In this document: positions 7,906-13,862 of the stretch, one piece after another
Layout: every line of letters starts with the position of its first letter
Position numbering within the stretch: the stretch's first letter is position 1
NCBI GenBank assembly: GCA_004431415.1
Contig: QPMI01000261.1
Location: 54,827-118,826, forward strand
Direction: 5' to 3'
Origin: Cyanophora paradoxa CCMP329
Lineage: Eukaryota > Plantae > Glaucophyta
DNA length: 64,000 nucleotides
Made by a program: the position numbers and the translations under genes
The notes under the pieces: generated by a model
Seen by the model: the letters and a program-made list of their open reading frames with translations, nothing else
The model's database searches: none
What the model was told of the DNA's origin: nothing

Positions 7906-9491
7906 ATGAGTGCCGCAGACGTTGCGAGTCCCGCAGAGGGCGCCGATGTGGCGGTGCGCACGCGCTTCTCTCCCCTTCCAGGCGCGCCGCGAATTGCTGA
8001 CAAACTTCGCCCATCCAAAGCCGCCGTCGCGGTATTTCAACCGCAAGCGCCGCGGATCTGTTAGTGCCGAATGCGATACTGCGAACCCGGAGGATGCGTT
8101 GCCCAAGCGCGTGTTTCCGAAGACAGAAGAGGAGAAGGTTTGTGACCCGCTCGGGCTTCTTTCGGGTGCTGGCGGTGTGTTTCGACGCTAATTACACATT
8201 TCTCGTTTCTCAGCGCCGGATAGAGAAGTCCATCGCCAACAATATCCTGTTCTCGCACTTGGACGACGCGCAGCGGAAAGAAGTGTTCGAGGCCATGTTC
8301 GAGGCCGCTAAGAAGGCGGGCGAGGTCGTTATCAAGCAGGGTTCGCACCGCGCGGCTGCTGGGTGCAAGCCCGCTGTTCTTATGTGGGGGAACTTCCCGA
8401 CCCGCGTAGGCGATGAGGGCGACAACTTCTACCTTGTTGATAGCGGCACCTTCGATGTTTATGTGAAGAAGGAGGACAAGGATGCGCTGGTTCTCACTCT
8501 CCAGGATGGCGGCAGCTTCGGTGAACTCGCGCTCATGTACAACTGTCCACGCGCTGCCACCGTGAAGGTTTGTCGCTCTCCGTGGAGTACGACATGGTCT
8601 TCACCTGCGGTTTGCAGGCACGCACCGACGGCAAGCTCTGGGCAATGGACCGTGCTACGTTCCGGCGGATTCTTATGGACACGACCAGCCGCAAGCGGAA
8701 GCAGTACGAGGACTTCCTTAAGAACGTGCCTCTTCTTGGTTCGCCGGAGATCCAGCTACTCAAGCCTCGTGTTGATCTGCTGCTGACATGCTTTGCTGCG
8801 CAGCTTCTATGGACTTCTACGAGCGTTGCACGATCGCGGATGCTTTGATGCCGGTCACTTTCAAGAAGGGCGAGACGGTTATCAACCAGGGCGACATTGG
8901 TGATGTGTTCTACATCATCGAGGAGGTGCGTGGGTTGCGGGTGCTAAGCTGAGGCCCTCTGGCACGTTCATTTCAAGGGAAATCTCTAATATACGACGGG
9001 CTGCAGGGCGATGCCGTTGCGAAGAAGGCACCCGCGGAAGGCGGCCCCGCCGTCGAGGTGATGCGCTTGAAGAAGGGTGCAGACCCCCCGCCCCTACCGA
9101 CGAGCGCCAGCGCGTGACTGTCCGCGCCGCCAGGTGACTACTTCGGAGAGCTGTCGCTCCTTACCGATAAGCCTCGCGCCGCGTCCGTCGTGGCGGTCTC
9201 CGACCTGGCGTGCGTATCTCTGGACCGGAACTCTTTCGTCCGCCTCTTGGGGCCCGTCGACGAGATCCTCAAGCGCAACATGGCGCAGTACAGTGCGCAT
9301 CCCCCATCGTTTTTGGGCCCGTATTTTTCGTGTCGCGGCGTCCGCCGCTCTGAGCCTCGACCGCCGCCACTTCGGCTGCTGTTGCCATAGCTTTGTTCCT
9401 TCCCCTCGCGGTCACGAGCTGATTCCAGCTTTCCATTGCAGAGAAGTACGAGGACGTCGTGGCAGGCGGTGCCTCCTCCGCGCAGCACTAA
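7906..9491 (+). CDS. PKAR: cAMP-dependent protein kinase regulatory subunit (two CNB domains); start uncertain
   Basis: Inhibitor site KRRGSVSAE; phosphate-binding cassettes [18 protein letters not shown] and [18 protein letters not shown]; TAA at 9489-9491. Confidence 0.95.
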
Positions 9492-9807
9492 GCAGACTGC
9501 GACTCACGCCGCCGGCAACCTCGACTGCGCCATCTGCTCCCCCGCTGGCTTTGGCGCGACGGATATCCCGATAGGCGTTGCTCTTCTGGGAACTTGACGT
9601 TTTGTATTGGTGGCTTGCCGTAGTTCTTCTGATCGTCCACGCTGCTGCAACATGTACATGTAAATGCGGATCAGCGCCGCCCCTTCCAGCTCTCCTTGAT
9701 ATCAGCATGCACTCTGAATCTGATAGAAGCATAAACAGCGTCCGTGCGACGTTCGGCGGGCGCCGCTAACGAGCGAAGACTAGTACTGGGCCCCCGGCCC
9801 ACCTCCC

Positions 9808-9840
<33 letters not shown>

Positions 9841-9910
9841 TTGACCTGGGCCCGCGTACGTATACTGCGAGCTCCTCGCTTGCTGGGTCGTCGTCAATTC
9901 CGGCCCATCG

Positions 9911-12900
9911 ATGGAGGGCGCCAGCGAGCGGGAGCGGGAACAGCAGCGGATTGACGAACGAGAGCGCTTGCGCGTTGAGACAGGTTCTGGCTACGCCCTC
10001 GAGATCCCCGAAGGCATGAGCACGCACGAAGTCGTCGCTCGCGGTGAGCTCTCCTTATGCGCATGTGGCGGTGACAGCTCGCGCTCGCGCCATTTGCCTC
10101 GCCGCCTGCCTGCAGAGATTCGGTTCCGCGCGCTGGTAATGAGCTCCTTCCCGCCTACCCGTGCGCAGCGACGGAGCGAAGAAACAGTCTCGAAGGACAG
10201 CAGGCACGTATGCGCGATCGGCGCTTGCTATTTCCCCCAAGAGTCGTTCAGACGCTCATCGAATGCGTACGCAGGGAGCGGACGCTCAGGCGAAGAAGCG
10301 CGCCTATGAGGAGGTCATAGAGAAGCTTTCCGAGTCAGCGACGGCGCCTTCGCCTCGGCCCTCAAAGGCGGGCGAGTTTTTGTCGCCGTCGCCTATCCCG
10401 GAAGCGGGTCCAGATGCGGGCCTTCGGCGCGCGTCGGTCACGTCGCTAGGCAGCGTGGATCGTGACATGGAGTCTGAGCTCGCGGATGCGGGTGTCATCG
10501 CTGCGCCGAGCTTCGTCGGGGCAAGGGAGCCCAGGCCGCTCGGCGATGGCGACAAGCCAGGGCCAGCGCACACCGCCGGCGCGGCAGCAGCGCCGGCGCA
10601 GTGCGCGTGGTGCGCACCATCGCCGTCTCCGCCGGCGATCGCCGTCACGGTCATCCCGCCGCCGGAGGCCGCGAGGTCCAAGTCGCCTCCGCCGTCCCCC
10701 GCTACGGCGCCCTCGCCCTCGGCCCCCATGCTGCCGCACGGCCGCTCGTGCGCCCCGCCCCCGCGCCCCGCCGGGCGGCGCCGACGGGTGGTGCGGGGCG
10801 CAGGAAGAGCATCGTGTCGCGCAAGGCGGCGGTGCTGAAGCTGGAGAGCCCTATGGAGCGGGCGCGGCGCATCTTGGACGAGATGAAGGAGAAGTACAGT
10901 GCGCGGGGCGGGGCGGGGCGGGGCGGGGCGGGCGGGGCGGGGGCGTGAGGGCGGGGGGGCAGGCATGGCGGGGGAGGACCGGCGGGCCCTCGACGTCGCC
11001 CTCGGCCTCCTCACCAGCGACCGCCCCTTCCTCCCCAAGATCGTCGACCGCCTCGCCGCACCCTCCCCGCCCCTCCCCCGGCCCCCGCCCTCCCCGCTTC
11101 CCCCCTCCGCCCCGCCTACCCCCATCGCCTCGCCGCCGGCCCCCTCGCCGCCGCCAATCGGGCAGGCTCCGCGGGCGGGGCCGACGGTGTCGCCGGAGGC
11201 GGCTGCCTCGCGGGCCTCGTCGGGAACCGAGGAAGACGACGAGCCGGCGCGCTCCGACGACTATATCCTCGCCCCGCGCCCCGCCCGCGCCGCGCCGCCG
11301 GGCCGCGCCGCTGGGCGCGCTGGGCCCTTGACGCTGAGGCGGGGGCGCACTCGTGGACGAGCTCGAGCGCTGGCTCCTCTCCGAGTACAAGGTCCACGAG
11401 CGGGACAGGCCCCAGGCCCGCTCCCGCCGCGCCTCCGTCGCCGCCCCGCAGCCCGACGAGGAGCAGCGCCCGCGCCCCGCCGGCAAGCGCCGCTCCTCCG
11501 ACGAGTGCGCCGCCCGCGCGCCGCCGCCTCCGCCGGGGCCGAGGCGCCCGCAGGAGCAACATCAAGCACACCAAGCAGACGCACGTCCAGCTCAGCCTCG
11601 CCCTCGTCCTCAGCAACACGTCCGCCCCGCCCCGCCCCGCCCCGCCCTGCTCCGGGCGGGGGCGAAGGATGCGGCGGGGGCAGGGCGCAGGGGCAGCTGC
11701 GGGAGGTGCTGAGCACGACGGACGAGTGGGACTTCGACTGCTTCCGGCTGGCGGGGATCACGCGCGGGCGCCCGCTCTTCGCCTTCTCGTACATGCTCTT
11801 CCTGCGCTACGACTTCGTGCACAAGTTCAACTTCAAGGAGAAGGCCCTCCGCAACTTCCTCAAGGCCCTCGAGGACCGCTACCACGCCAACCCCTTCCAC
11901 AACTCCGCCCGCCCCCGCCCTCCGCCCCCGGCCCCGGCCCCCGCCCTGACCCCGCCCCAGACCCACGCCACCTGCGTCATGCACGCTTGCCACTACTTCC
12001 TCACCCGCTTCCCCCCTCTCCAATATCCTTGCTGCCGCCCCGCCCCGCGCCCGCGCCCGCGCCTGCGCCGGCGCCCGCCGGCTCCTCTCCGCACTGCCTC
12101 CTCGACCTGCCGCGGCACGCAGCTGAGCGACGTCCAGACCTTCGCCGTGCTCCTCGCCGCTGCCGCGCACGACATCGGGCACCCCGGTACGCCCCCCGCC
12201 CCCGGCCCCGGCCTCCGCCGCCGGTGCGGGGCGGGGGCGCGGGGGTGAGCGGGAGCGGGCGGGGGGCGGGGGCAGGGGTGAACAACACGTTCCTGGTGAA
12301 GACGGGGGCGGAGACGGCGATCGTGTACAACGACCGGTCGGTGCTGGAGAACTTCCACGCGTCGCAGCTCTTCGGGGTGGCGGTGAAGGAGGGCCTCTTC
12401 GCGGGCCTCCCCGAGGAGCGCTACCGCGAGCTCCGCTCCCTCGTCATCGACATGATCCTCGCCACCGGCCCGCCCCCGCGCCCCCCGCGCCCCGCCCCGC
12501 CCCGCCCCCTCTCACCCCCCGCCCCGCAGACATGACGCGCCACTTCGAGCTCCTCTCGTCGTTCAAGGGGCGGGTGACGACGCCCGGGGCGGCGCCGCTC
12601 GACATGAGCATCCCCGAGGACCGCTCCCTCGTCCTCCAGATCGTCATGAAGTGCGGTGCGCTTCATGCCTCCCCCGGCGCGGCGCATGGCATGGCGGGGG
12701 CGAGGGGGCGCGGGGGCAGCGGACGTGTGCAACCCGACGAAGGAGGTCGGGCAGATGCGCAAGTGGGTCGAGGTCCTCGTCGAGGAGTCCGCGCCCCGCC
12801 CCGCCCCGCCGCCCCCGCCCCGCCCCCAACCCCCCACCGCCCCAGGTTCTACGGCCAGGGCGACCGCGAGCGCGACGCCGGCATGCAAATCAGCCCTTTC

Positions 12901-13325
12901 GTGCGCCCAGCCCCGCGTCCCGCCCCCGCCCGCCGGCTGACGCGGCAGCAGATGGACCGGACGAAACCGGCGGTGCCGCAGTCGCAGCTGGTGCGCTTCC
13001 CGCCTGCCCCGCTCCGCCCTCGCCCCGCGCCGCGCCGCTGACTGGCGGCCGCGCAGGGCTTCGTCGACTTCGTGATCGGTGCCGGCGGGGCGGGGGCGGG
13101 GCGGGGGGCGGGGCGGGCGGGGCTGAGGCCGCCGCAGCGCCGCTGTTCGGGGCGATGGAGGCGTTCGTGGGGGCGGAGCCGATGGCGGAGATCACGAGGC
13201 GCCTGCGCGACACCCGCGACTACTGGACCGCCGAGGCTCGCCCCGCGCCGCCTTCCCCCTTCCCCCGCCACTCCTCCCGACGTCGACTCCCCCCGCAGGC
13301 CGCCAAGAGCGCCCCGGAGGCCTGA
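9911..13325 (+). CDS. Class I 3',5'-cyclic nucleotide phosphodiesterase
   Basis: NPFHNS|THA, HDIGHPG|VNN, YNDRSVLENFH, ILATD|M, KCADVCNP, EEFYGQGDRE, SQL|GFVDF after splicing. Confidence 0.93.
11263..11350 (+). other. AT-AC (U12-type) intron 1 in PDE gene
   Basis: 5' ATATCCTC, branch CCCTTGAC (11325-11332), 3' GCAC; removal gives in-frame DD-F-VDELERW. Confidence 0.85.
12023..12118 (+). other. AT-AC (U12-type) intron 2 in PDE gene
   Basis: 5' ATATCCTT, branch TCCTCGAC (12099-12106), 3' GCAC; removal gives PPL-Q-QLSDVQTFAVLLAAAAHD. Confidence 0.85.
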
Positions 13326-13862
13326 GCGGCGGCTGCGGGTCCCGCGCGGCCCCTCCAGGCAGGCCGCCCAGTTTTGCTCGGACCTGCGGCCCTTCCCTTT
13401 CGCACCGTAGGCAGCGCCTTCGGACGCTTCTTTGCACGTGTCTCTCCCGAGTCCCCCCTCTATCTCAGCGTCTCTTTGATTTAACCCCCAGTTGCTGAAG
13501 TCTTGTAGGGCTTGGTTAGCTGGCACGTTCCTTAAGCTTCCCCTCTTGCATGTCCCCGCTTCCAGGCCTCCATCGTTCGCATAGATGCAGAGTCGACGTC
13601 CGGATCCGCATGCGTAGATGCTTAGGAGCAAGTTATTGTAAGCGCACATCGCACAGGAATTCGAAGAGGCAGTTAGGCCGTTCATTACTACTAAGTTACA
13701 TGCATTCGCATCTGTACATGTTCAACTTCTTTGGCAACCGTTGAACTGTTCTAGCCAAGCAGACGAGGGGCGAGGCGAAGGGGAGATTTAGTAGGAAACT
13801 TCAAAGGCTTGAAAGGGTCCGACGGTCTGGATCCGGTGGCCATGGAGGGGCGGGTGCGGGCG

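Follow-up and report, generated by a model that had tools for sequence, protein, structure and literature searches.

The closest described counterparts of the introns reported here are the minor (U12-type) introns of the same organism. Larue & Roy (2023) counted 77 minor introns in Cyanophora paradoxa and, among the minor snRNAs, obtained a significant match for U11 only; U12, U4atac and U6atac were not found, and the authors suggested that the minor-splicing machinery of this alga is possibly transformed (PMC10639083). A hypothetical C. paradoxa RBM48 is listed in a preprint on maize RBM48 (bioRxiv 10.1101/341917). Expanded and transformed minor introns have been described in Physarum polycephalum, as far as that system is summarised in the work that cites it (PMC10639083). 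The C. paradoxa gene set was built with BRAKER1/Augustus and comprises 25,831 genes with 9.2 introns per gene; its authors caution that the models require curation (PMC6704402). The program intronIC takes annotated introns as its input and can shift their boundaries by no more than ~10 bp.

The stretch of C. paradoxa DNA analysed here (64 kb; hereafter, the window) carries gene tig00001094_g6997, which encodes a class I 3',5'-cyclic nucleotide phosphodiesterase (PDE). Its exon pieces match Pfam PDEase_I (PF00233), and the spliced product contains the His/Asp metal-binding motifs and the invariant Gln of class I PDEs such as PDE1 and PDE4. Unlike these, it belongs to a glaucophyte group of sequences and has a long, Pro/Ser-rich N-terminus. 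In the corrected gene model (Table 1), 15 of the 17 introns are short, GC-rich and of the GT-AG or GC-AG type. The remaining two, nos. 5 and 9 (introns A and B), start with AT and end with AC. Eleven introns have a listed RNA joint, and the rest follow from contig pieces or from the reading frame. GC donors are frequent for a single gene, occurring in four of the 15 major introns (10204, 11907, 12468 and 13236).

Table 1. Features of the PDE gene and of its two AT-AC introns (positions are those of the window)
Feature	Position	Strand	Basis
Class I PDE gene g6997, corrected: 18 exons, 17 introns, 744 aa	9911–13325	+	Open frame once spliced
U12-type AT-AC intron A: intron 5 of 17, 88 nt, phase 1, at D-D-F/V	11263–11350	+	Sequence, RNA joint
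Intron A, U12 5' splice site ATATCCTC	11263–11270	+	Sequence
Intron A, predicted branch site CCTTGAC; A at 11331, 19 nt from 3' end	11326–11332	+	Sequence; branch use inferred
GT-AG stretch, 67 nt, an intron only in the public model	11385–11451	+	Protein comparison, length and frame arithmetic
PDEase_I catalytic-domain exons (~residues 420–736)	11684–13235	+	Pfam matches, homologue comparison
U12-type AT-AC intron B: intron 9 of 17, 96 nt, phase 2, codon Q514, catalytic domain	12023–12118	+	Sequence, RNA joint
Intron B, U12 5' splice site ATATCCTT	12023–12030	+	Sequence
Intron B, predicted branch site CCTCGAC; A at 12105, 13 nt from 3' end	12100–12106	+	Sequence; branch use inferred

Both introns fit the 5' consensus RTATCCTY and both end in CAC. 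The branch consensus CCTTRAY, located 10–20 nt from the 3' end, is matched exactly in intron A and with one mismatch (CCTCGAC) in intron B. Taken by itself, the 5' motif is not significant, as it occurs three times in the window with 1.15 occurrences expected. The full set, consisting of the 5' site, the branch and a YAC end at the right spacing, occurs twice, with 0.02 occurrences expected per window in 200 composition-matched simulations. A relaxed scan of both strands (one mismatch, AT-AC or GT-AG ends) retrieves only introns A and B in the 64-kb window. The first-pass annotation of this DNA, made from the sequence alone, had proposed the same two introns and noted no other of this type among the introns that it parsed; its coordinates, branches and ends hold without change. 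A third ATATCCTC copy (38483, minus strand) is not accompanied by a branch and an end to match, and the ATATCC and GTATCC sites elsewhere in the window (8242, 9563, 16148, 37489, 38483 and 53970) likewise have no correctly spaced branch and end.

The 3' part of intron A contains the word GCTGAG (11333–11338, + strand) directly 3' of the U12 branch, which resembles CTGAG/CTGAC words found ~17–21 nt before the 3' ends of major introns nearby. Intron A ends in GCGCAC, and several neighbouring major introns end in GCGCAG. The AG at 11337–11338, 12 nt upstream of the end of the intron, lies in frame and could act as an acceptor; its use was not seen. We also considered that introns A and B are copies of one another and rejected this idea: their similarity ranks fifth among the 136 pairs of g6997 introns and lies within the low-complexity background.

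Four presumed RNA runs from two studies were aligned to positions 9800–13500, where many spliced joints identify them as transcript-derived. The joint 11262→11351, which excises intron A from AT to AC, is present in run X15 (short side of 26 letters, no positional ambiguity, depth 2.9), i.e. in a single low-depth contig from one study. In run X16, which comes from the same sample as X15, an aligned piece of a contig begins at 11351 and is preceded by nine letters, consistent with the same joint. The joint 12022→12119, which excises intron B from AT to AC, is present in both X15 and X17, i.e. in two studies, with short sides of 60–62 letters and no ambiguity. Both introns, proposed from motifs by the first-pass annotation, are therefore truly spliced. 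The frame could in principle also be kept by other, GT/GC-AG parses around the two introns, but these are absent from the RNA: none of the contigs contains such a joint, including one to the acceptor at 12122, which the first-pass annotation had named as evidence that would count against AT-AC splicing. No contig retaining intron B is found in X15, X16 or X17, the runs with depth at this position, although contigs lose rare forms and may miss retention at a low level; the depth of the intron B bin in these three runs equals the contribution of the downstream exon alone.

The best match to g6997 is the 783-residue EukProt protein EP00741_Cyanophora_paradoxa_P007233 (tig00001094_g6997.t1), which is identical to the corrected model except for three junction regions. 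The public model translates through intron A and then regains the frame by means of the 67-nt GT-AG "intron". The RNA reads this stretch as exon, in continuous pieces 11351–11505 of X15 and X16. Intron B is retained in the public model as 32 codons. At the other differing junction, intron 2, the public model uses a GT donor 4 nt downstream and an acceptor at 10278, so that the product has equal length and differs in two residues (GA versus AP). One contig of run X18 backs the GC donor GCACGT and the acceptor at 10274 of our intron 2 (10204–10274, + strand). As anticipated by the first-pass annotation, which had remarked that gene predictors miss such introns, neither A nor B is part of the public model. 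Joining all exons gives the open product of 744 residues, and the excision of A restores the motif E-x-x-W-L-x-S/A-x-Y/F, which is common to two Gloeochaete proteins and the paralogue tig00000802_g4280, in line with the earlier claim that removal of this intron repairs the frame. The claim that removal of B deletes 32 codons from the catalytic domain also stands: the 32-residue insert is found in no close homologue, and its excision sets the spacing of the His motifs to the standard 36 residues, compared with 68 if it is kept. The RNA joints and the homologues rule out the reading of A and B as coding sequence. The frame and the conserved protein are intact only after the exact AT-to-AC excision of both introns. 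The public model of paralogue g4280 reads cleanly through both intron positions; either this gene is without both introns or the introns there have been predicted correctly.

The explanation that best accounts for these observations, to which we assign a probability of roughly 0.88, is that C. paradoxa still has its minor spliceosome, which removes A and B as ordinary U12-type AT-AC introns. With described introns of this type they share the ATATCCTY site, the CCTYRAC branch 13–19 nt ahead of a terminal YAC, phases 1 and 2, a location among major introns and exact excision in RNA. They differ in their very GC-rich bodies (81–85%), in the CCTCGAC branch of B, in the C at position +8 of A and in their host, a class I PDE gene. 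By analogy with what is established for U12 splicing, the ATATCCTY 5' site would be recognised first by U11 and later by U6atac, the CCTYGAC branch would pair with U12, its A bulging out, and the first AC 13–19 nt downstream of the branch would serve as the acceptor. In pairing with canonical U12, each branch site would form a single mismatch and a single G-U pair, a tolerable departure.

It is highly improbable that the major (U2) spliceosome, or a hybrid of U11 with U2/U6, removes A and B. U2-type AT-AC introns are known in humans (PMC11347168), three of the four minor snRNAs have escaped detection in C. paradoxa, and the major-like CGCTGAG beside the U12 branch of A has parallels in several neighbouring major introns. 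An intron of the U2 type is expected to lack U12 motifs and to have the 5' site and branch of a major intron, but A and B both combine RTATCCTY with CCTYRAC, a pair found in no major intron of g6997, and their 5' sites differ from those of all 15 major introns, which start with GTGCG, GCCCG or GTCCG. The reports of U11 and of a hypothetical RBM48 for the species also speak against this route. The minor spliceosome of C. paradoxa could also be transformed in the manner of Physarum, with diverged U12 and U6atac and a U12 branch-reading region suited to CCTYGAC, a view that refines the best explanation and does not compete with it. The detection by Rfam models of U11 alone, with a transformed machinery suggested by the authors (PMC10639083), is in its favour, as are the G that precedes the branch A in both introns, the C in place of the second T in the branch of B and the C at +8 of A. 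Yet CCTTGAC lies inside the standard consensus, the 5' sites are textbook examples, deviations of this kind are expected from an intron background of 81–85% GC, and no consensus can be drawn from just two introns. We regard this refinement as possible but doubtful. The likeness to Physarum, as that system is summarised in the citing paper, consists of a possible lineage-specific gain of minor introns in Cyanophora and a hint of diverged snRNAs; unlike in Physarum, the signals here are near-canonical and minor introns are few, the relaxed scan having yielded two candidates, rather than massive numbers, in the 64 kb of the window.

Minor introns are slow to be spliced and are regulated in some animals and plants. 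The first-pass annotation had suggested that PDE output may be gated by minor splicing, i.e. that controlled intron retention sets PDE activity. Retention of A would indeed cause a frameshift upstream of the catalytic domain. However, the form with B retained is absent among the contigs, and its retention would be in frame, adding 32 residues to a loop that tolerates insertions: a goby PDE3-type protein has 44 extra residues at this loop, a nematode protein 33 and the Gigaspora protein 21. Such gating is very unlikely and the suggestion finds no support here; both introns look constitutively spliced, with no hint of a regulatory switch.

That C. paradoxa retains minor splicing, as the first-pass annotation concluded, is right but has already been published (n=77, U11; PMC10639083). 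Of the machinery, U11 and a hypothetical RBM48 have been reported in the species; Rfam scans find no snRNA in the 64-kb window. New here are introns A and B themselves, both absent from the public gene model, and the corrected model. They share species and intron class with the published minor introns, but the count of 77, being annotation-based, very probably leaves them out. Since the public model misses both, 77 would be a lower bound, assuming that Larue & Roy used the EukProt annotation. At n=77, the probability that one 17-intron gene holds two minor introns is ~1e-5, and in a rough model ~0.2 genes with two minor introns are expected genome-wide; this expectation rises to 1.5–6 genes at n=200–400. 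The presence of two minor introns in one gene was therefore discarded as a special signal, being unremarkable if the count of 77 is an underestimate. With two RNA-confirmed minor introns added, the published count for this model glaucophyte is probably too low.

The first-pass annotation had also proposed comparing intron positions among PDE orthologues. The available comparison is with ten intron-bearing PDE genes of other lineages (Gigaspora, psyllid PDE4, Micractinium, Borealophlyctis, Gonapodya, Phlyctochytrium, ant PDE8, falcon PDE1B, leech PDE1 and Perkinsus, the last compared by flanking residues), which are distant paralogues and not orthologues. In all ten, positions A and B are without an intron, and neither AT-AC introns nor RTATCCT donors occur; in this respect, too, A and B stand apart from described U12-type introns. 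A phase-0 GT-AG intron common to psyllid PDE4, falcon PDE1B and leech PDE1 is located exactly 2 nt upstream of B in an ungapped block. By rough estimate, the chance of such a neighbour ranges from 0.8% (counting positions shared by three genes) to 16% (counting any homologue position). Elsewhere, an exact positional match was found for one of the ten catalytic-domain introns of g6997. The introns of this gene thus look mostly lineage-specific and, with only one of ten matched, the AT-AC pair may be lineage-specific too. In the phylogenetic tree, g6997, its paralogue g4280 and two Gloeochaete proteins form one group (support 89/98), PDE1 and PDE4 form a separate one (93/77), and the backbone is poorly resolved. 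A metagenome scan for intron-bearing PDE homologues returned loci that are essentially intronless and uninformative.

Two origins of the introns can be weighed against this comparison. With about even odds, one or both were gained within glaucophytes, either as new U12 introns or by major-to-minor conversion of a nearby site. The vacancy of both positions in the ten genes, which include those of a bird, an insect, a leech and Gigaspora, and the mostly lineage-specific introns of g6997 agree with a gain, and C. paradoxa has inserted many introns into genes that it acquired horizontally (PMC6704402). This must be set against the paralogy of the comparison genes, evident from the tree, the fact that several of them are intron-poor or come from lineages possibly without U12 splicing, the presence of C. 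paradoxa as the only glaucophyte genome in the comparison, the poor alignment around position A, and the great rarity of U12 gain in general (PMC2831892). An ancient origin of B, as a homologue of the phase-0 GT-AG intron of animal PDE1/PDE4 that underwent a 2-nt slide and a switch of class, would explain why three animal genes have an intron exactly 2 nt upstream. The slide could have proceeded through an exon ending in GT before ATATCC, which would create a GTATAT donor 2 nt upstream. We consider this origin unlikely, as the neighbour was spotted post hoc, intron sliding is reported to be very rare, a second cluster of near positions at residue 697 makes near pairs nothing unusual in this family, PDE1 and PDE4 cluster together and apart from the glaucophyte clade, and the intermediate state is found in none of the sampled lineages.

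Returning to a gain within glaucophytes, a more far-reaching version can be put forward tentatively: Cyanophora may be creating new AT-AC minor introns and may hold several times 77 of them, overlooked by its gene models, A and B being glaucophyte gains spliced, possibly, with diverged U12 and U6atac. Ongoing gain of this kind would place Cyanophora next to Physarum as another example of minor-intron gain. If A and B are lineage-specific gains, they bear on an open question, as U12 gain is thought to be extremely rare, and Cyanophora would offer a culturable system for studying minor-intron gain and for finding the three undetected minor snRNAs.

The cluster at residue 697 is formed by the phase-0 intron that precedes GFVDF in g6997 (12991–13056, + strand). 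It occupies the same position as an intron in the Borealophlyctis and Gonapodya PDEs and lies 1 nt from an animal PDE1 intron and 3 nt from a PDE4 intron (offsets 0, +1 and -3).

The surroundings of the gene have features of their own. The upstream neighbour on the same strand (~8200–9492, +) resembles, by eye, the regulatory subunit of cAMP-dependent protein kinase, with motifs for cNMP binding (for example FGELSLL...PRAASV). The PDE gene may therefore have a cAMP sensor gene as its neighbour. Immediately 5' of the PDE start codon lies a long poly-C tract (9807–9840, + strand).
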